DNA of 32,401 bases, from the NCBI RefSeq assembly GCF_001194135.2, contig NC_068985.1, positions 105,130,983 through 105,163,383 on the forward strand, read 5' to 3'. Under the pieces are notes generated by a model. The model searched no databases. It had not been told where the DNA came from and worked only from the letters and a program-made list of their open reading frames with translations. The translations under genes were made by a program, and so were the position numbers. Positions 2,730 to 31,265 of this stretch are shown here, piece by piece; position 1 is the first letter of the stretch; each line of letters opens with the position of its first letter. The stretch is from Octopus bimaculoides (lineage: Eukaryota).

Positions 2730-3868
2730 AGCGAGTCCCAACTTCTTGGCTAATACTTTATTTTATCGATCCCGAAAGGATTAACGAGAAAGTTGACCTC
2801 GGTGGGGTCAGAATGTAAAAAAATACCTAACTAAAACCACAAACCACTGTTTTCCAACGCTCTAACGATTCTGCTAATCTTTCTAATTATGGCATGATGC
2901 CAGTAATTTTGAGGTCAGCGAGCTCGATTGCATCGAACCCAATGTTCAGCTAGGACCTGTTTTATCGACTCCAGAAAGAATGAAAGGCAAAGTCGACCTC
3001 GTCAGTATTTGAATTCAGAACATAAAGACTGCAAAATAATAGTTTCAAATTTTGGCACAAGGTCAGCAATTGAACTCCGAATGTAAAGGCGGACGAAATG
3101 CCGCTAAGCATTTTGCCCAGAGTGCTTAAGATTCTGTCAGCTCGCTGCCTCCAGTGTGCAAAATATTGGTTTTAAATTTTGGCACAAGGTCAGCAATTTC
3201 AAGGCAGGTGGCAAGTAGATTGGATAGACCTCGGTATTCAGCTGGTACTTATTTTATCGACCTCGAAAGGATGGAAGGGCAAGTTGACATGAGCGGGATT
3301 TGAACTCAGAAACGTAAAAATGGACGAAATGTGAGAAAGCCGATAAGCATTTAGCCCGGTACGGTGGCGATTCTACCAGCTCGCTGCCTAACAGTAAAGC
3401 AATATTGGTTTCAAATTTTGGTACAAGGCCAACAAGTTCAGGATAACGGGTAAGTCGATTACATCGACCACACTGTTGAACTGGTTCTTTTTCTATCGAC
3501 ACCGAAAGGATGAAAGGCAAAATAAGCCTCCGTGTGATTCGAACTCAGAATATAAAGAAGGATGAAATGCCGCTAAGCATTTTGCTCAGAGTGCTAACGA
3601 TTCTGCCAGCTCGCTGCTTTCAATGTGCAAAATATTTATTTCTTTATTACCTACAGGAAGATAAACATAGAGGGTACAAACAAGGACAGACAAAGGGTTT
3701 AAGTCGATTACATAGACCTCAGTACGTAACTGGTACTTATTTAGTCGACCCCGAAAGGATGAAAATCACAGTCAACCTCGGCGGAATTTGAACTCAGAAC
3801 ATAACGGCAGATGAAATACCGCCAAGCATTTCGCCCGACGTGCTAACGATTCTGCCAGCTTGCCACCC
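2730..3868 (-). mobile_element. Array of six copies or fragments of tRNA-derived SINE family B inside hemocyanin intron 1
   Basis: Repeated GGCGG/AGCGAGCTGGCAGAATCGTTAGCAC...GTTCTGAGTTCAAAT...CTTTCATCCTTTCGGGGTCGATAAAATAAGTACCAG on the minus strand at about 2730-2880, 2884-3030, 3041-3149, 3168-3389, 3401-3618 and 3637-3868. A-box and B-box-like motifs present. Confidence 0.9.
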
Positions 3869-4062: not shown

Positions 4063-5132
4063 ACAATTTCCGTAATGCTTTGTTGGCAAAACAACATGTG
4101 CAGGACACGTTTAACTCTTTCAGACGCTGACAAATCATAATTTTGACATATCACACTAACCTGAAAATCAAATTTCGTAAAATCTTTCTCAAAGAAGATA
4201 GATCGCTATCTTCTAGAATTCCACTTTGAATATTGAATTTCAGTTTTGCTTTTGAAATTATATGTTTGTAAATTTGATTCAATGTTACGGTTGTGATTTA
4301 TAATCAATTTTCCTGTCGTGGTGAGAAATATAAGTTTTGAGAATGCGGAATACACTATATTGGTTTCGATTCCTGCTTGAAACCAATTCCCATTACTGAA
4401 GCTGCTACTCGCTTCGCAAAAAATGCTTTTGTCGACAAGATTTGAAAGAAGCATTGAAATCTAGCAAACTTCGCACTTATTTTCTGTGTTTAGTACACCC
4501 CGTAGTTAATTGTACCTCTCGAACAAATTGATTTTAGCTAAGCAGTTTGGCCGTTTAAGAGTTATAATGCTTCGTTGGTGACATATTATAGTGGAATACT
4601 AGTATCAAAATACTAAAGACTTCTGAGATAGCTCACGGGTAACTCTGTTCATAAATTAGTTGAGACCACGGCATTTAATTTCTAGTAACACCTAATACTC
4701 TTCCTTTACTAAGCTTATGGCTTTGGGAAACCCCGAGCGTCATACTTTCAATTTGCTTTAAATATAAGTATGTTGTGTCAAGAATTATTTAATGATAATA
4801 TTATTAAGGAAGAAACTCGGAATTACAAGTTGGTTTTTAAAGATACATTTATACATTAAATAAGCAGAAATAAGTTATCCTCCAACTATTGTGTGTTTTG
4901 ACTGATGGGTTAAAGACGATATGGAGCGTTTAAAAATACTGACCGAGTAACAATCTCTGAATCCCTAAGAGATATTAGCATAGTCTTTACTTATGTTAAG
5001 TTGTTGAGACAAAAAAAAAAAAAAATTATACAAATAAGGCATGTGATGTGTGGAATGTGATGAACTCTATAAAACATTTTTACTGCTTTAGTAACATTGT
5101 GAAAGTAAAATCTAACTCGGTATAGATGGAAT

Positions 5133-5507
5133 GTTGTTGGCACTCCGTCGCTTACGACATCGAGGGTTCCAGTTGGTCCGATCAACAGAATAGCCCGCTC
5201 GTGAAATTAACGTGCAAGGGGCTGAGCATTCCACAGACACGTGTACCCTTAACGTAGTTCTCGGGGATATTCACCGTGAACAAGGCTGACCTTTTGAAAT
5301 ACAGGCACAACAGAAACAAGAAGTAAGAGTGAGAGAAAGTTGTGGTGAATGAGTACAGCAGGGTTCGCCACCATCCCCTGCCGGAGCCTCGTGGAGCTTT
5401 AGGTGTTTTCGCTCAATAAACACTCACAACACCCGGGCTGGGAATCGAAACCGCGATCCTATGACCGCGAGTCCGTTGCCCTAACCACTGGGCCATTGCG
5501 CCTCCAC
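5133..5507 (-). mobile_element. Full-length tRNA(Arg)-like SINE, tail type 1
   Basis: A box TGGCCCAGTGG, B-box-like GTTTCGATTCCC and a (CAA)-type end. Closely similar to 12204-12591. Possible degenerate 12-nt TSD TATAGATGGAAT (5121) / TATGCATGGAAT (5508). Confidence 0.92.
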
Positions 5508-5811
5508 TATGCATGGAATAGCAAGTGCAAGATATGAAACTTAACTTAGTTTCAGTTAATTATATTGTTTGTAGTAAATTAAATATTTCCACTTTCACGC
5601 TAGGAGACACTTAAAACTTGATATGAAAACGTTGAGGTATTGAAACATGATAAACCATTTTCACTGGATTTTAACTAGAATACACATGCAAAGCAGTAAT
5701 GTTTAAGTGAATTAAAGGGCTTCAAAGAATACAGTTCTAAGTATTTCGATATGGCTCTGTTGTAAGTTATGTATATAAAAGAAGCATATAGAGTCAGTGA
5801 GGAGAAGTGTT

Positions 5812-5978
5812 TAGTCAATCCCATCGTTCCTGTACTTGACTGGTACTTATTATATCGATCTTGAATGGATGAAAGGCAAAGTTATCCTCAGCAACGTTTC
5901 AGCTCAAAGCTTAAAGGACCGGGATAAATCCATAAAGCATTTTGTTCGACGCTCAATCGATTCCATCAATATACCACC
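5812..5978 (-). mobile_element. Degenerate SINE family B copy
   Basis: CTGGTACTTATTATATCGAT...GGATGAAAGGCAAAGT...AAGCATTTTG matches family B. Confidence 0.75.
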
Positions 5979-6653
5979 CTGATTCATAATGTCATAATAC
6001 TATTAATAAAAGTAATATTATTAAAAGTATTGTTACTCAGAGTTGTTAATATTACGAACGCTCGTCATTAAATTTCAGACTTAACCTCTGAATCTCAGAT
6101 ATACTTTTGGAATAATTATTCTAATATAAAATGAAAATGCTTTTTAAAAATAATTCGAACACATCTTTCTCGTGTTTGTTAACAGATTTCTTAAATTGAT
6201 TTTTCGCATATTTTTGGAATTGCAATATATTTACAATTTCCCTATCACCCTTCTGAAAACAGTTGTTGATTTAGTGCAGCGCTGATTCGGGTCAGAGAAT
6301 TTAAAGACCTTGTACCTATGATACGAAGACTTATTTAAATTTCAGTTTTTATAGACATGACCTCCTTTCTGATCAATATGTGTAAGAACTTTTCATTTAT
6401 ATTTCAACATTTTAGAGCCTATAACGAATTTATCTTACTATTTTGATAAAGTAAATAAATACCTATTCCTTTTATCAGTAATTTTGTTAAAAAAGTAACG
6501 ATTTAGATTTTTCTTTTCCCTTTTTCCTATCAAATAAACATTTGAATCACCGTACTGTTTTATAAAGACAAAGGAAGATTATGGTTGTTTAATTATTGTT
6601 GTTCATTTTGGTTTTCATGATTCTTTTAAGATGTTAAAGTTGAGATTTATAAA

Positions 6654-6730
6654 GGCGGTGAGCTGGCAGAAACGTTAGCACGCCGGGCGAAATGCTTAGC
6701 GGTATTTCGTCTGTCTTTACGTTCAAATTC
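6654..6730 (+). mobile_element. SINE family B head, 3'-truncated, abutting a LINE
   Basis: GGCGGTGAGCTGGCAGAAACGTTAGCACGCCGGGCGAAATGCTTAGCGGTATTTCGTCTG...GTTCAAATTC, then LINE ORF2 sequence. Confidence 0.9.
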
Positions 6731-9240
6731 AGTGCCTTGACAGTTTGTCTCGAACAGTTAACGCCGTACGGTAGCACTGCCAAGCCAAGGATTTCTGGTA
6801 ATTATCCAGATACCCCGGCCCGAACGTTCTCCTGAACAGGTTGATCAACTGATTTTCATCGTAGCCCAGGGTCTCCCCCAAGGCGTCTTCGGACATAAAG
6901 TCTACTAACCCGCTATAAAATTCCGCGGTGGTACTCCTGCAGCCGGCATTGCCCGCTCGAGAGAGNNNNNNNNNNNNNNNNNNNNNNNNNNNNNNNNNNN
7001 NNNNNNNNNNNNNNNNNNNNNNNNNNNNNNNNNNNNNNNNNNNNNNNNNNNNNNNNNNNNNNNNNNNNNNNNNNNNNNNNNNNNNNNNNNNNNNNNNNNN
7101 NNNNNNNNNNNNNNNNNNNNNNNNNNNNNNNNNNNNNNNNNNNNNNNNNNNNNNNNNNNNNNNNNNNNNNNNNNNNNNNNNNNNNNNNNNNNNNNNNNNN
7201 NNNNNNNNNNNNNNNNNNNNNNNNNNNNNNNNNNNNNNNNNNNNNNNNNNNNNNNNNNNNNNNNNNNNNNNNNNNNNNNNNNNNNNNNNNNNNNNNNNNN
7301 NNNGCCTTCCCTAGCAAGGATAACGCCCGCCCAGACCAAGTCTGGGTTAGAGTAGTCACCCTGCTGGTTACCTCGCTCCAAGTTTTCTCTGTCTGAAGGT
7401 CTGGACCAAACCAGATCCCGAGCAGCTTAACAGGACCTTCCGTCCAACGACGTTATTAGACGTCATCGGATTGCCCCTCCAGGTGCCGAATTGGAAACCG
7501 ACTGACTTGTCCTTCTTAACGTTTGCTCCTGCCACCGCCTCGTAACTTTTGATGGCCTCTTCCACCACTGGAAGCTGGCCCTCATCTGCCACGATGATGG
7601 AGATGTCATCCGCATACGCCGTAGCTCCTCTTCCACACCACAGATCATTCAGAGCCCCCTAGTACCTTCAACTTCCGTAGCAATGGCTCAAGAGCCAACA
7701 CATACAGAAGCGAGGACAGGGGACACCCCTGACGCACTGAGCATTCGATCCTGAATGGTTTCGAGAAGAAACCATTCACTTTTACGACAAACTCGATGTC
7801 GCTGTACAAAACAGCAATCCAACCGCGGAAGGTCGGGCCCAGGCCAGCCTTCTCGATGACCGCTGCCAAGTACCGATGGTCGACGCTATCGAATGCTTTA
7901 GTCTAGTCTAACTGTACTAGTGCCCCTCCTACGCCAGAAAGTTTCCCTAACCTCTCTAAGGAGTAGTGTATTAGGTGGAAATTGTCGCGGATCGACCTGC
8001 TCGGGATGGCGCAATTTTGCGCCCCCAACAAGTCTGTCCACGACCCGCGCTAACCTTTTCGCTAGCACCTTGGCCAAAATCTTTAACTCTGCGTTTAGCG
8101 GAGTTATGGGCCTAAAATTACTTATCTCGTCCTCCTTGCTCGGGTCCTTTCTGATCAACGTCACTACCCCTCTACTTGCAGACCTGGGAATTCTCCCATT
8201 CTGCTGCCAGTTGGCGTAAACGCTGCCCAGCAGGTGCCCGAACAAGTCTGGCATGATTTTATAAAATTCGTAAGGTAGACCATCCAGCACCTCAATCACC
8301 TCCTCGGCTGTGATTGGCTCCTCAGAGCACTCAGCCTCTCGTGCCGAGGGACGCGGGCCACCAGACAGGAAGTCCCTAAGAGCCTCACCATGATCCAGCG
8401 TCCCGCTCCTCCCAAACAACTCAGCAGAGTGCTTGTAAAGTGTTTCACACATCTCGTCCCGTCCTTCGACCGAACACCCACTATCATCCACCAGAGACCT
8501 AATTGTGGCATAATTTCCACGCTGGGTTTCTACCGTGCGGGTTCATCCGGAAACACTAATCCCCTCACGGCCCAATGCTCGCACTTTAGCCCGAACTCTG
8601 CACCCCTTGTGTTTACTTTTCTACCAGTCGAGCCAACACTATCGATGCGTGCGTCAACGATAGCGTTAAAGTTAAACAACAGGGCGGCCATCACCTCACT
8701 CGGGTCTACTTCTGGTGGCACTTCTGCCACCTTTACACGTTAAGTCCGTCTTCCCATGTAGGTTGGCAGAAGCACCACATCTTCTGTTTTCAAGGAGCTC
8801 ACAGAGTACTCGCGGACCTTTTCCTCAGATGCGAAACGCACCTCAACAGTGCCATATGTCTTGCCCCTCGCAGTATACGTTACGTCCTTCCAAATCGGGG
8901 CAAGACATTTTTCAATTTTCTCTTTTCGAAATGTTTAAATAGTCTGTTTTTCGGATAGAATGATTTAAATATTATTGTTTTTCGGTCCTATTCAACCATC
9001 TTGGAGGAGAGTAATATTTTTATATCCCCATCCTCCTCTTTCATTCTCCTGAAATATTCCTGTAGTGTCTCTACATGAATATCAATGTTTTCGGTTGCCA
9101 CAGCGACAATCGCCGAAAACTTTTTTACAGGGTATAATTTCATGTATAATTTCGACCGACATACTCTAGCGTACTGGGAAGAGGAAAGCGGTTAGGAAAG
9201 CAGTAAAATCAGGTGTTGTGGAACGCCGAGAGCACGGCGA
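6731..9240 (-). mobile_element. Defective L1/Tx1-type LINE: ORF1 N-terminal half joined to ORF2 linker plus reverse transcriptase, with no endonuclease domain and a truncated 3' end
   Basis: RT motifs DGLPYEFY, NFRPITPLNAELKILAKVLAKRL, AFDSVDHRYL, QGCPLS (7731-7714), YADD (7616-7605), VKLLGIWFG and LAWQCYRTALTVRDKLSRH. ORF1-like EKCLAPIWKDVTY..GTVEVRF at ~8900-8830. Frameshifts and stops present. The 5' boundary is approximate. Confidence 0.9.
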
Positions 9241-9249
9241 GATACTATG

Positions 9250-10850
9250 GAGTCCTGGTCATCTACAGCAGCAAGAAGGGTCTCTAGCCGTAATGGTTTT
9301 TTTGTTCCACTAGGTCAAGGTTCTTTCTGCCGAGAGAGCGCGAGTGTTCTTGTACAACAGCTCTCGACACTTAAAACAACTACACGCACAGGTACCTGCC
9401 CTTCTCAGCCTTCCAGAATTGTCAACCTCAAGTTCTGCAGAGAGAGGGGAGTGGCGAGAGGGACAGGTGGCAGTAACCACTAGAAGTACTAGTCACAAGC
9501 CTGCACGTAGACAGCCTGCAGACCATCGGTCGCTTTTCTTCGTATTGGACATCGGAGAATTTCAGCAGCATCCCAGGTGATTGAGCAGCCTTTTTGGGGC
9601 AGCACTGCTCACCCTAGTAAGGAAGCAGCCTAGAAAACATAGCCAGACTCCTTTCAGCCAAATACAGTAGGAGTTCCAGTCCAACCTTGATGACGAGTTC
9701 GAGATGATAGGATCACCAACTGGTGGACCAGAAGAAAAGTAGAACCAGTTCAAAAAAGTCTTCACAGAGACTGGTTTGATGGCGACGACGCCTAGTTGAT
9801 CTGTCCGTATTAATAGCTGCATACCCTGTCCTAACCAATAATGCTTCTGGATTCTCTGTCTGTAGAATACTGGTTTTCTCATCTATGTCGAAGGGAAACG
9901 CAGCCACTAACCAGCAGATTTTGACTTCTGGTGATACGTTTAGTATTCTTACTTTGAATACCCTTCGAATAAGGTAAATGAGGATGCGGGTGAGTTCGTC
10001 ACTCGTTAGGGTGACTGTTGAGTGATTTTTGGCCTCCTCCTTTGAGGCGAACCTCACTTCGACAGTCCCAGATTTTCCCCCATGGCTATATAGGTTTTGC
10101 TCTTCCAAACTGGTCGTAAACATTTTTCAATCTGCTGGTGCATTGCCTGCTCTACTTTTCTTTTTGCTTCACTTCTTTCATATAGAACTGTCTGCAAATT
10201 AGTTTCTTGGTGGATAGATCTAGGAACATTCTCCAACATTTCTCCAACATACATTTTGCACTTTTAAGTTCATTTTCGTTTATAAAAATGTCTTCACATA
10301 CTTGTCGCTTCGCGTCGGCAAAACCTCTCACAACGGATTTGCATGGTTCTTTTTTCTTGTTCTTGTTTTTTTCGTTAATGATGTTGTTGTTGGTGGTGGT
10401 TTGCTGTTGCCACTGGCGGTGGTAGTGGAGGTGGCAATATTCTCGCTAGTGTTTTTGCTTTTTGTGGTCATTGATCGCTACTGTTGTTCCTGTAATGGTT
10501 GTTCTGAGATTTTTAGCATCAGAAAGTTACTTTCACACATTTCACGTACTATATTGTCGCTGTAGCTGTTTCTGGTGCTGCTGCCACTACTGCTGCCACT
10601 ACTGCTGCCACTACTGCTGCCACTACTGCTGTTACTGACTTTTTCAATTTGGCTGTTCTGTTCTGCGGATACCTAGCTGTCCTTTTCATCGTACGAATGA
10701 TCCTTTTTTAAGCAAAAATTGAGCCGTGTCTTTGCTAAACAATCCCTAAATTAGCCTCTAAGGGCTACAGATGGAGAAATAATAACCAACTTCTTAAGAT
10801 CCTGGTTATTTATCTTATAAGGATAAAGAAAGTTCAATATATAACTTTGT
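9250..10850 (-). mobile_element. Second, diverged L1/Tx1-type element represented by a disrupted ORF1 only
   Basis: ATG at 10689 gives MKRTARYPQNR...SSSGSSSG. The segment IEKCLRPVWKSKTY...GTVEVRFASKEEAK...KVRILNVSPEV is homologous to the ORF1 remnant at 8900-8690. No RT detected. Boundaries approximate. Confidence 0.7.
10579..10631. repeat. 12-bp tandem repeat (TGCTGCCACTAC) x ~4.4
   Basis: Exact units at 10579, 10591, 10603 and 10615. Encodes SSSG repeats in the minus-strand ORF1 frame. Confidence 0.95.
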
Positions 10851-20063: not shown

Positions 20064-21292
20064 AGATATTCTGAATTAAATTAAATTAACAGGTATAACT
20101 AAGAATCACTTTTTTCGCGCAAAAAGAAAAATCAATTGAATTACAGAAACATGAATATCATATCGATCTTATCAGAATACCATCGATTGATATGAAAATC
20201 AAATATGTAACACAATATTAACTTTCTGGGGGAAACATGAAATTTGGTAAATATACAGGTCAATTCTGTGTAGAATAATGTACAAAAACTACGTTCATTC
20301 TTTACAGTTTTAGCAACACTGATTTCTTATACGATATCATTACAAATTAATGATACTTTTAATTTCTAAGTAGGTGACAATAAAACTACAAGAATATGGC
20401 AGAAGAAGTTCTTAATGTTGCTAATTCTATGTACCATTCAGAATGATAATAGACTGAATCGTTACGAAGCCATTCGTAGCATACTATGTAAAACCAACAG
20501 ATTGGAAATAATATCGTCTGTTGTACCACCAGAGGGAAGTACTATGGTGTCTTGTTTGCGTGGTAGCCTAGCATGGTTTCCTTTTCCCTTTTAGCACAGT
20601 CTGTACAACTTAAATAAGGGCAACTCTGCATTCGAAATTAGGTCTTCCCTACTGAGATTGGGTTCAACAATTGAACCATCTACCTGAGCACGTTATCATC
20701 CTTTTTTTAAGGATATTACTTCTGACACAGTTAAAACCAACGTCTTCTAATCAGGTGATACAGCATTTGATAATAACAATACTGCATATGCCGTGGATGC
20801 TAAACAGTTTAAAGCTTTGGCCTAGATCTTGTAAATGGATTTTCTAAGGTATGCGACATTACAACATTATCACGAAAATCTGAGCATGTTTATCAGCCTA
20901 GCCCAAATGCATAGCAGTAAAATTTGATCAGAAAAATCGATGATAACCCAATTAGAATCGTCATTTCAGTTAACTATCTTTGCTCTACTCTCAAATGTTA
21001 GGAATGAGTTTTGGAAAAACTTATGTGAGCACAAATTATTGGAGTCATGCAATTCTGAGTACTATTACTATGATTCGTACTTTAAAATTAATTCATTGTT
21101 GATACTGAAAAAAATATTCGTAGACTTCTTTGGTAAGTGACTTGAAATAATAATTAATGTCTTCATTATTATCACTCTAATTTTCTAATTTTGATTGCTT
21201 CCATTAATTCTCAATACCCCGCTCTGATAATGGAGCTCCCCTCTATACATTCATACACGCATACATAGGTACATACATACACCTCCCCACAC

Positions 21293-21779
21293 AGCGTGGC
21301 TGTGTGGTATGAAGCTTGCTTCTCGATCATATGCTTTTGGGTTCAGTCTCACAGTGTGGTACTTTGGGCAAGTATCTTCTGCTCTAGCTTCGTGCCGATC
21401 AAAGCTTTGCCAGTGGATTTGATACTCGGAAACTGAAAGAAGCTCGTTATATATATATATATNNNNNNNNNNNNNNNNNNNNNNNNNNNNNNNNNNNNNN
21501 NNNNNNNNNNNNNNNNNNNNNNNNNNNNNNNNNNNNNNNNNNNNNNNNNNNNNNNNNNNNNNNNNNNNNNNNNNNNNNNNNNNNNNNNNNNNNNNNNNNN
21601 NNNNNNNNNNNNNNNNNNNNNNNNNNNNNNNNNNNNNNNNNNNNNNNNNNNNNNNNNNNNNNNNNNNNNNNNNNNNNNNNNNNNNNNNNNNNNNNNNNNN
21701 NNNNNNNNNNNNNNNNNNNNNNNNNNNNNNNNNNNNNNNNNNNNNNNNNNNNNNNNNNNNNNNNNNNNNNNNNNNNNNN

Positions 21780-28686: not shown

Positions 28687-29413
28687 GGCTAGAGTACGAT
28701 CAGAGATGATGGTATTAATTGAATTGGATGTGTTTTTTAAATACGTTCTTAAATAATTATTCTATAATTGAACTCGTTTTCTTTTGTTCAACAATTGGAG
28801 TACAGTGGACGAAAGCAAAGCACACACACTTACTATACACTTACACACACTTCAACCATATTATAAGATATGAAATGCGTAGATATATAAAAACGGGCGA
28901 AAATGAAAATTAAAAAAAGCTTTCGGCTTCCAGGGAAGAAAAAAGCTTAAAAAACAATCCCCAGCACCAAAAGTAGAAAAAAAAAAAAGAGAGCAAAGAA
29001 AATAAACTAAAGTGCATGCCAATCATTCAGTTCTCCAGTAACGGTTTTGACTCTGACAGAGCTGTGTTATGGCGTTGTCAAACATCCTCGTCTTTATCCG
29101 ATTAACAGAATAAGAAAGTTACGGAACGTAGAGAGAGATGTCATATGTCAGACACGTCAGGAAAAAGGTTCGATCTTGAAGTTTCAGAAACCACAAGAAA
29201 AAGAAAAAAAAAAAAGAAAAAAAAAAAAAACAAAACAAACCAAAAGGCATTATTCGTGTACAAAGGTAACGCGCCACTTCCCAGTTAACAGTTTTGTGTC
29301 TCTTCGTTTTCTAAGTTGGTAAGTTGCGATTTGAAATAGATTTGGTTACTATTTTTAGTAGGTCAAGCGGCCGAGTAGAAAGCTTATTCAATATATTCCT
29401 CCTTTTCCTATAC

Positions 29414-29524
29414 ATGTATGTATGTATGTATGTATGTATGTATGTATGTATGTATGTATGTATGCGTATGTGTGTGTATGTATGTATGCATGTATGTGTA
29501 TGTATGTATGTATGTGTATGTATG
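29414..29524. repeat. (ATGT)n = (CATA)n microsatellite at the 3' end of RLE element copy 1
   Basis: Pure to ~29464, then interrupted. Joins the element at TATG|CCT. Confidence 0.95.
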
Positions 29525-30803
29525 CCTCTTCTATTTTTTGATTATTATAAATCTTTCACTGAGGAGGGAGCCGGTCTCCAACAAAGATACACGGTTCCAT
29601 TTTTGAGATGTAGTTAACGCAGACAAATTCACATTTGGAACTTGAAGAAAGTCTTGCATATTTTTACTGTTCCACTCACAGATTGCACTTGCAATGTACG
29701 AATTAGCCAGTCTACTTCTCTTTCTGAAAATTCCAGTTTATCCAGATTCTCCTTTAAGCATTTACTAACAAAACCTAGTGCTCCAATTATTATTGGTATG
29801 AACATGAATTCATAGTCTAGATATAGAAGCTGGAGGTTTCGAAGAAGTTGTCCATAGATATCCTCATTTTCTTTGATCTTCAAAGAGATATTTATATCTG
29901 TAGGGCAACTGACCTCTGTGATGATACATACATTTTCTCCTCTGTCCCAAACAACGACATCCGGCCAGTTATTTGACAGAAGTTTTGATGGGAATATTCC
30001 ACCAGTATTCCTTGAATTGGTGTTTATGAATGTATTTCATAACAAAGGGATTTTCTAAGTTTATTTTATGACAGTCTTTTTTGCGGCTGGCATTGTAAAT
30101 TGTTTTAGTAACAACATCGTGTCGCATTGGGAGGTAGTACCGCGACGACATTTTAGGACAGCTGCTAATCACATGCGTAATGTCTTCCACAGAAACATGA
30201 CATGGCCTACACATGCGCTTGCACTTTGGGATTACAAGAGCGTCACTGTCTATCTTGTTCACCAAGCATTTTGTAGCAATCTCCTTTCTTGGATTGCAAA
30301 CGCATAGCCTTCAAAGTGTGATGTGAAGTAGTGGTCCTGTGTCCAAGAGAGGCTGCGCTTCGTATCAATTCTACTGTCTTTTTCAAGCTTCTGGGCAACA
30401 TACCCATGCATGGTCTTTTTGTTTTTGTATGCTGAGTGCTTTTCATCCAGGTCTTCTCTGAGGTAAGAGAGCCCCGCTGTTTCGGGGCTGTATAGGAGAT
30501 CATCAGGAAGAGAATGTTTCTTGAGGATTTCACTGCCAACTCGTACAATGTTACTCACTTCATTTTTCAGCACTGCATTTATATCTTTATTTTTGCTTCT
30601 ATTGTTCAGCAAGTGCTACCTGAGTGATACCATACGGCATTCAAAGTCCGTCTGCACTGATCTCAGGCCTCTACCACCTTTACTCCTTCTTAGGTAGAGC
30701 CTGTTAACATCACTGTTTCTGTGGAAGTTCCCAGTTGTCAGGATTTTGCGGGTTTTGATATCTATGGAGCGGATTTCCTCAACAGACCAATCAAGTATCC
30801 CAA
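29525..30803 (-). mobile_element. 5'-truncated R4/Dong-like non-LTR retrotransposon with restriction-like endonuclease (copy 1, pseudogenised)
   Basis: FGILDWSVEEIRSIDIKTRK, RLYLRRSKGGRGL, MHGY, AFAIQE, a C-X2-C-X8-H-X4-C knuckle (30211-30158), RHD (30124-30116), PDVVVWD (PD at 29964-29959), IITEVSCP, KIKENEDIY, PIIIGALG and stop at 29629. One internal stop and at least 2 frameshifts. 3' UTR ~104 nt. Confidence 0.9.
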
Positions 30804-30826
30804 ATGTATGTATGTATGTATGTATG
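30804..30826. repeat. (ATGT)n tract between the 5' junction of copy 1 and the 3' end of copy 2
   Basis: ATGTATGTATGTATGTATGTATG, then the same CCT junction as at 29525. Confidence 0.95.
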
Positions 30827-30990
30827 CCTTTACTATTCTATTTTTATTAGAATTCTTCTTACGTGGAGGAAGCTGGTTTCAAACGGAAACAGAAGCTTCA
30901 TCACTGGAATTTGGATAACAACAATGATTATTACACTTTGAAATTTAGGAAATACTAGCAGGCTTTTACTGTTCCACTTACAGACTGCAT
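30827..30990 (-). mobile_element. Short 3' fragment of the same R4/Dong-like family (copy 2)
   Basis: Aligns with 29525-29690. Encodes QSVSGTVKAC*YFLNFKV* versus QSVSGTVKICKTFFKFQM* in copy 1. Confidence 0.82.
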
Positions 30991-30999
30991 CGCATGTAA

Positions 31000-31265
31000 A
31001 CTTTCACTTTTCATTTATTAGCATTATTCCATGCAGGAAGGAACGGTTTTCTAACAGAAAAAACGTAAGCTCCATTACTGAAAATTAGATAACAACACTT
31101 AATGCTATAAATTGAAATTTAGTGAAAGACTTGCATATTTTTACTGTTCTACTTAAAGATTGTATTTGTAAATTTCGTGTTAGTCAGTCTCTTTCTTTGC
31201 CTGAAAATTTCTAGATTGTCTCAAACCTTTACTAACATAATCAAGCGCAATAATTATTACACTGT
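31000..31265 (-). mobile_element. Older 3' fragment of the same R4/Dong-like family (copy 3)
   Basis: GAAAGACTTGCATATTTTTACTGTTC matches 29645-29670. Relic peptides IIIALDYVSK and TVKICKSFTKFQ. Confidence 0.78.

Follow-up and report, generated by a model that had tools for sequence, protein, structure and literature searches.

A nest of Dong-like non-LTR retrotransposons that probably integrate into (CATA)n microsatellites of Octopus bimaculoides

Introduction

Long interspersed nuclear elements (LINEs) with a restriction-like endonuclease (RLE) are mostly target-specific, and some HERO families and Togen, whose target is (TG)n, insert into microsatellites (PMC4640811). Dong targets (TAA)n in moth, mosquito and snail, as described for Dong of Bombyx mori, DongAg of Anopheles gambiae and DongBg of Biomphalaria glabrata, and Waldo, a member of the R1 clade, targets (ACAY)n, which includes ACAT (PMC3812793). 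Here, we describe a stretch of 32,401 nucleotides (nt) from Octopus bimaculoides (contig NC_068985.1, positions 105,130,983 to 105,163,383 of the forward strand; hereafter the window), in which three 3' ends of Dong-like elements lie nested among (CATA)n arrays. In our reading, to which we give a probability of about 0.85, the nest consists of three old, 5'-truncated insertions of retrotransposons lacking long terminal repeats (non-LTR elements) from the Dong lineage (R4 clade), which integrate into (CATA)n.(TATG)n microsatellites.

In cephalopods, Dong-R4 LINEs are reported to be abundant, ancient and recently active (PMC8967140; PMC13282606), and among molluscs they are reported to be almost confined to this group (PMC10294476); in O. 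vulgaris, five families with 1,129 recent insertions have been reported (PMC13282606). The papers on octopus Dong-R4 elements use RepeatMasker-type classes and give no link to a microsatellite and no target (PMC8967140; PMC13282606). In the literature searched, with Repbase Reports and Dfam outside its coverage, no description of a (CATA)n/(ACAT)n-specific RLE LINE was found, nor anything pertinent on a connection between tetranucleotide repeats and retrotransposons in octopus. Hence, microsatellite targeting by relatives of Dong was already known, and it is the (CATA)n target that we did not find described.

Results

Layout of the nest

All three element ends have one orientation, on the minus strand, and lie between and beyond two arrays:

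29414-29524, (ATGT)n array, (CATA)n on the minus strand; 28.8 copies with 85% matches (Tandem Repeats Finder)
29525-29628, minus strand, 3' untranslated region (3' UTR) of copy 1, whose last letters, ...AGAGG, adjoin the array; hairpin at 29567-29598
29629-30803, minus strand, coding remnant of copy 1, ~390 codons, 5'-truncated just past the reverse transcriptase (RT)
30803 to 29525, minus strand, copy 1 as a whole, with (CATA)n at both ends
30804-30826, (ATGT)n array, a perfect (CATA)5.75 on the minus strand; 5.8 copies with 100% matches (Tandem Repeats Finder)
30827-30999 (read from 30999 to 30827), minus strand, copy 2, reduced to the 3'-terminal ~173 nt of a diverged relative; hairpin at 30869-30899 (alignment, blastn and folding)
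31000-31265 (read from 31265 to 31000), minus strand, copy 3, reduced to the 3'-terminal ~266 nt of a second such relative; hairpin at 31040-31073

Both arrays were located where the preliminary description of this DNA, made from its letters alone, had placed them, and alignment confirmed the common junction proposed there for copies 1 and 2 (...AGG followed by CATACATA). Copy 2 ends in ...AAAGG followed by CATA and adjoins copy 3 with its 5' end, while copy 3 retains the last 34 codons and the 3' UTR (residues 361-394 in tblastn; blastn; alignment). Identity to copy 1 was 77% over 57 nt for copy 2 and 73% over 146 nt for copy 3, and copies 2 and 3 were 73% identical over 155 nt (blastn). No further copy of the family was found elsewhere in the window. 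The three ends had been described as one family, and they do form one lineage; however, sequences that are 73-77% identical represent diverged subfamilies rather than one tight family.

The array at 30804-30826 is the upstream part of the array that copy 1 entered, and that at 29414-29524 is either the tail of copy 1 or the downstream part of the split target array. Outside the nest, Tandem Repeats Finder detected a single degenerate (CATA)-like array of 37 nt in ~29.8 kb of known sequence, so the odds of a random 5' junction falling there are well under 1%, and chance is a poor explanation for the position of copy 1.

Between copies 3 and 2, a CATGTA remnant of an array had been proposed, which is better read as the body of copy 2. 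On the minus strand the supposed remnant, TACATGCG, aligns with TACATTGCAAG in the body of copy 1, and across the region TACATGCGATGCAGTCTG of copy 2 aligns with TACATTGCAAGTGCAATCTG of copy 1. Furthermore, three other organisms have TCCATGCAA at this site (30991 C>T, 30997 T>G), an even closer fit to the body. The junction of copies 3 and 2 is thus compatible with the targeting model, but is not evidence for it.

Repeat junctions elsewhere in the genome and in other organisms

Junctions of other copies were searched in short assembled contigs (not reads) from public runs of the same organism. The contigs of three runs were placed on a reference made of the body of copy 1 and the array of 23 nt upstream of it (29900-30830), where a copy that is truncated elsewhere and then enters the repeat appears as a joint. 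Among the 15 best-supported joints, 13 led from variable places in the body (29995, 30013, 30014 twice, 30019, 30082, 30127, 30203 twice, 30204, 30306, 30318 and 30525) to 30804/30805, into (ATGT)n, and each of these was present in at least two of the three independent runs. When the last 27 nt were removed as a control (29900-30803), none of the top 15 joints was of the body-to-array kind and the joint rows fell from 292 to 116, and hence ~176 distinct junctions are body-to-(ATGT)n. In contigs of the three other organisms (328 rows), 10 of the top 15 joints were body-to-array. Therefore, (CATA)n at variable 5' truncation points, which the preliminary description had predicted, was found in the same genome and in three further ones.

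The 3' ends of other family copies also enter (ATGT)n, as seen in loose ends before 29515 (28-38 contigs per run). In the loose-end consensus of the body alone, the top six rows per run were dominated by points of subfamily divergence, and flanks are not readable in that way. Regarding family size, summed word depth in run X1 was ~7.5-7.8e5 near the 3' end vs 3.7e4 near 30800, with a single-locus depth of ~35-60, which gives an order of 10^4 3' ends vs 10^3 copies reaching 30800. A gradient as steep as this from 3' to 5' is what 5' truncation typically produces.

At the 5' end of copy 1, the ACAT microhomology noted earlier (30804-30807) is real. Genome-wide, longer copies read ...CCAAATGT/TGGGATCAGC... 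through 30807 (46, 51 and 39 contigs; agreement 0.77-0.78), and ATGT at 30804-30807 is therefore both native element sequence and the first array unit, a 4-nt microhomology at the junction.

(ATGT)n itself, as viewed at 29405-29485, is extremely abundant in these genomes, and contigs that pass from such arrays to sequence unlike the window have (TA)n or AT-rich letters as their consensus, so that many (ATGT)n arrays are compound TA/TGTA microsatellites that do not adjoin an element.

Flanks of relatives from other assemblies

Flanks were further compared in six relatives (L001-L006) with 44-48% protein identity to the window copy. L005 holds a full-length copy (~4472-8424) with (CATA)58 upstream, beside a non-element flank, and (ACAT)27 downstream, and L002 has its 3' end in (CATA)9.8, the 5' end being cut by the contig. 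In L001 and L003, (TACT)n-type arrays stand on both sides, and a second copy in L001 begins right after the array of the first. L004 contains three full-length, nearly identical copies with a period of 4,346 bp and (TTCC)n between them, each of which starts with TCACTCGCATGCAG exactly after (TTCC)n and ends in ...AAATACA before the next array, and L006 contains two head-to-tail copies with (TACT)n between them. Self-nesting, as claimed for the window, thus recurs in L001, L004 and L006 as head-to-tail arrays spaced by the target repeat. Array length across loci ranged from 6 to 83 units.

By protein identity, the two (CATA)n relatives pair at 60%, whereas the (TACT)n families are scattered and one of them pairs with the (TTCC)n family at 57%. 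Because the distribution of repeat units disagrees with the protein tree, several changes of target have taken place within the lineage.

Other repeats were seen in these contigs: an unrelated LINE with an apurinic-like endonuclease and RT (L001 406-3081), ~0.8 kb upstream of the (TACT)n array with the Dong-like element; a 17-bp satellite of ~200 units upstream of the element in L003 (3-3571); and a 135-bp tandem repeat common to L002 (5456-6086) and L003 (10974-11360), two contigs of one sample.

Protein domains and predicted fold

In a large protein collection, homologues of the copy-1 protein were up to 51% identical, many with an RT domain upstream, and intact relatives had ~1,130 residues with RT, CCHC knuckle and RLE in one open reading frame (ORF). 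RT is absent from copy 1 in the window through truncation, and the order RT-CCHC-RLE is read from the relatives. A profile of nine relatives matched solved R2 retrotransposon proteins (E 1e-30 to 2e-13) in three collinear stretches, namely RT, CCHC (CRxC...H...C) and RLE (KPDLI...VVDV...EK); a search of the PDB with the single sequence gave no match. In Pfam, the window fragment had no significant match, and full-length relatives showed only RVT_1 and a weak zf-RVT, with no apurinic-like endonuclease domain. The N-terminal ~450 residues of the relatives had only chance-level Pfam hits, far below curated cut-offs. The N-terminal motif VSYRRNRDYS..F.WTYELN is conserved whether the target is (CATA)n, (TACT)n or (TTCC)n.

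The uninterrupted C-terminal piece of 114 residues in the window (29973 to 29632) was modelled by AlphaFold2 with an alignment of relatives, at a mean predicted local distance difference test (pLDDT) score of 94.2. Its best full-coverage Foldseek matches were R2Tg and R2Pm (template modelling score, TM, 0.74-0.79), in structures of proteins caught initiating target-primed reverse transcription, and weaker matches were PD-(D/E)xK cap-snatching endonucleases. Given this fold match to the RLE of R2, the window element encodes an RLE.

Clade placement

Named references for Dong, R4 or HERO did not come up in two large protein searches; they were taken from the RLE-LINE alignment in the supplement of Mahbub et al. 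2017 (PMC5678591). The window fragment matched Dong of Bombyx (E 5e-15), DongAa (4e-13) and R4 (AAA97394; 8e-13) by blastp, with the next clade only at 0.07 and HERO-1_SP and HERO-2_DR above 1. Full-length relatives scored 316-337 bits with Dong and 222-238 with R4, compared with 178 or less for Utopia/NeSL/R2 and 113 or less for HERO. Bootstrap support in a neighbour-joining tree of six full-length relatives and the references, two of them Dong (581 columns; outgroup CRE1), was 99/100 for relatives plus Dong and 100/100 for relatives plus Dong plus R4; the tree is built on relatives that are 44-51% identical to the window fragment, not on the fragment itself. These comparisons support placement of the element in the R4 clade, Dong lineage, and together with the fold they bear out its first characterization as R4/Dong-like and RLE-encoding.

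Membership in HERO was rejected on the lowest scores among RLE clades except CRE and on a separate branch in the tree, and membership in R2 on a separate branch and on flanks of microsatellite instead of ribosomal DNA (rDNA). Waldo (R1 clade) was rejected because the element has a C-terminal RLE instead of an apurinic-like endonuclease. Grouping with NeSL/Utopia or CRE was not seen, as the relatives group with Dong. Finally, (TAA)n was at no junction, the arrays being (CATA)n or, in relatives, (TACT)n or (TTCC)n; the element is therefore a different member of the Dong lineage, not Dong itself.

Coding remnant of copy 1 and variation in the family

Copy 1 translates into ~390 residues, spread over three frame segments, that extend from T-F-G-I-L-D-W (30807-30787) as far as the stop at 29629-29631; an in-frame stop lies at 30616-30618, and frameshifts lie at ~30259-30286 and ~29969-29986. 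Recognizable motifs are GGRGL of the thumb (30664-30678) and a CCHC knuckle (30158-30211); the RLE domain spans 29632-29973, with WPD at 29944-29967 and ITEVSCP at 29902-29922. Copy 1 had been called the longest and best preserved; it is the longest, yet it differs from its own family consensus at ~6-8% of positions. Since no RT coding continues rightward of 31265, copy 1 is truly truncated rather than interrupted by copies 2 and 3.

Roughly one in three family contigs carries an extra G behind 30285, the site of the first frameshift, which is therefore probably a private 1-nt deletion of copy 1. An extra GTT (one codon) behind 30733, in about a quarter to a half of contigs, is a subfamily marker. 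A joint from 30203 to 30286 that skips 82 nt was seen in five contigs of each of the three runs, and in other organisms too, and reflects either a deletion subfamily or a replaced segment in the linker region. Near the end of the ORF, (ATGT)n is joined directly to 29648, within the last codons, in several contigs. Other subfamilies diverge at 29629-29648 into A-rich sequence, so the 3' UTRs differ strongly among subfamilies, and some may be much shorter.

A hairpin in the 3' UTR

In 11 of 11 sequences, each folded alone (three from the window, seven from copies in relatives and one consensus of the copy-1 family), a hairpin lies 24-59 nt before the element end. It consists of an outer stem of 3-6 bp, a 5'-side spacer of 2-4 nt (UU in most), an inner stem of 3-6 bp and a short loop (5 nt in 10 of 11) with a 1-nt bulge, often followed by CGG. 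Stem sequences differ between families with pairing kept, and Z-scores against shuffles ranged from -1.0 to -4.5. Two sequences were out of register in the MAFFT alignment of the hairpins, and conservation was judged from the individual folds. In addition to the three minus-strand hairpins of the window given in the list above, folding placed the hairpin at the following positions in relatives:

L002, ~3273-3300
L004, ~6826-6848
L005, ~8364-8390
L006, ~9613-9633

By analogy with R2, it is likely the binding site for the protein of the element.

Other features of the window

The degenerate (CATA)-like array outside the nest lies at 21245-21281, with no Dong-like 3' end detected adjoining it. 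It is followed, at ~21283-21445, by what we take to be the common octopus short interspersed nuclear element (SINE), whose (TA)n end adjoins a gap. An A-rich low-complexity tract (29198-29245) directly beyond the nest on its downstream side, with a summed depth of ~1e5-8e5 in other organisms, could derive from the tail of another retroposon or be no more than a common simple repeat. At 7654-7917 on the minus strand, a short stretch resembles RT, with 30-34% identity to that of the relatives (E 1e-5); it is presumably a remnant of some other LINE. A DNA search of a phage collection gave no match.

Discussion

Proposed mechanism and order of events

Target-primed reverse transcription of R2 is well established, and by analogy the protein of the octopus element would bind the 3'-UTR hairpin of its own RNA, its RLE would nick one strand within the array, and the freed 3' end at the nick would prime reverse transcription, probably aided by pairing with a few CAUA units at the RNA 3' end. 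Synthesis of complementary DNA (cDNA) would often halt early, and the cDNA end would be joined to the upstream half of the array via short ACAT microhomology, as at 30804-30807. Every insertion would leave target array on both sides and the next could land beside the previous one, which would lead to head-to-tail nests and tandem arrays. The preliminary description held that the tails regenerate the target; target array indeed stands at both sides of the insertion, but is better put as left by each insertion, and the downstream 'tail' of copy 1 may largely be the other half of the target array rather than made by the element. The determinant of the (CATA)n preference may be the endonuclease, as the preliminary description proposed, another domain or pairing between RNA and target.

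In the window, copy 1 would have entered the array following copy 2, with copies 2 and 3 already present. In the three other organisms, contigs with copies 2 and 3 and their left flank were found at ~5% divergence; being common to these organisms, copies 2 and 3 predate their split. Joints from 29439-29497 to 30803-30807 in the other organisms are no more than array-to-array matches, with sides of 19-24 nt.

Alternative explanations

The alternative that survives best, although we consider it improbable, is that the head-to-tail layout arose not by serial insertion but in one event, by template jumping of the RT from one RNA's 5' end to the 3' end of a second RNA, or by unequal crossing-over between arrays. 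Template jumping is an established property of the R2 RT, and the nearly identical, evenly spaced copies of L004 fit such an origin. The window copies, however, are 23-27% different, have different truncation points, and two of them are common to three other organisms. Moreover, a free array and a non-element flank stand upstream of L005 and of the first copies in L001 and L006, and an upstream partner would be required for every one of the ~176 extra joints, spread over many positions.

It is more improbable still that the preference is for a short motif and that a short target-site duplication containing CATA expanded into the arrays at both ends once the element was in place. The great variation in array length between loci would suit such growth, but independent expansion would be needed at both ends of nearly every copy, 5' truncation points included, the pattern holds for three different repeat units in relatives, and head-to-tail full-length copies begin exactly at the array end. 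Least credible is a LINE of the ordinary type, its (CATA)n tail made by slippage and its insertion free of target preference, so that copy 1 reached the tail of copy 2 by chance: many LINEs do end in short tandem repeats and a clear upstream array is present in only one of the three window copies, but body-to-(ATGT)n joints in four organisms, read against an array-free control, long arrays upstream of full-length relatives and a (CATA)n content well under 1% of the window all speak against it.

Several observations weigh against insertion into (CATA)n as the origin of the nest. Copy 3 has no clear array at either end and a 5' flank without (CATA)n, and the junction of copies 3 and 2 is without a clear array too, so only copy 1 is array-flanked on both sides. 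The joints that were judged are the 15 best-supported rows, not a census of all 5' junctions. Among them, the cluster at 30012-30019, which coincides with subfamily divergence into TGTA-like sequence, could stem from an internal repeat instead of truncation; once it is discounted, the counts among the top 15 are 8 in the same organism and 6 in the other organisms. An empty site of copy 1 was not recovered in the three other organisms, whose contigs end inside the arrays. Lastly, nicking, priming and the role of the hairpin are inferred by analogy.

As to how insertion into microsatellites is directed, the target may be chosen largely by pairing of the RNA 3'-end repeat with the nicked strand, and not by a DNA-reading domain of the protein, an idea that we hold to be possible but rather unlikely. 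It would explain how (CATA)n, (TACT)n and (TTCC)n came to serve as targets of families with only 44-60% protein identity that do not cluster by target, as well as why the N-terminal motif is kept across the three target types. If so, a change of tail alone would retarget the element.

Significance and comparison with known systems

Dong-R4 elements are reported to be among the most numerous recently active LINEs of octopus and have been discussed as active in the octopus brain (PMC13282606). If they insert almost only into one tetranucleotide repeat, hits in genes would be far less likely than is usually assumed, and the (CATA)n landscape would be partly shaped by Dong-R4, each insertion splitting one array into two. 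The wider lineage, with several tetranucleotide specificities on similar proteins, also offers a natural series for the study of target choice in RLE retrotransposons. The points of interest are thus the several tetranucleotide targets, the conserved 3' hairpin, the frequent tandem self-nesting and the bearing on octopus LINE activity.

Among known systems, R2 shares the RLE fold and the CCHC knuckle and serves as the model for the inferred mechanism, but it belongs to another clade and its target is 28S rDNA. The ACAT of Waldo is the same repeat unit as CATA here, whereas Waldo has an apurinic-like endonuclease, a domain that the window lineage lacks, and is of a distant clade. The microsatellite families of HERO and Togen are likewise RLE LINEs with microsatellite targets; HERO, however, stands apart by its low reference scores, and Togen is set beside the element by description only.

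R4 is an insertion in 28S rDNA. R4 of Ascaris (AAA97394) falls in the same clade as Dong and the relatives and has the same domain order, but it scores lower than Dong with the window element, and the target here is a microsatellite. Cephalopod Dong-R4 LINEs resemble the window family, with its ~10^4 copies, in abundance, and the window family is presumably identical with the annotated families. The closest likeness is to Dong, by score and by tree, with an RT-CCHC-RLE protein and insertion into a microsatellite whose repeat flanks the element; the differences are the target, (TAA)n in Dong vs (CATA)n here, and a protein identity to Dong of ~27-34%.

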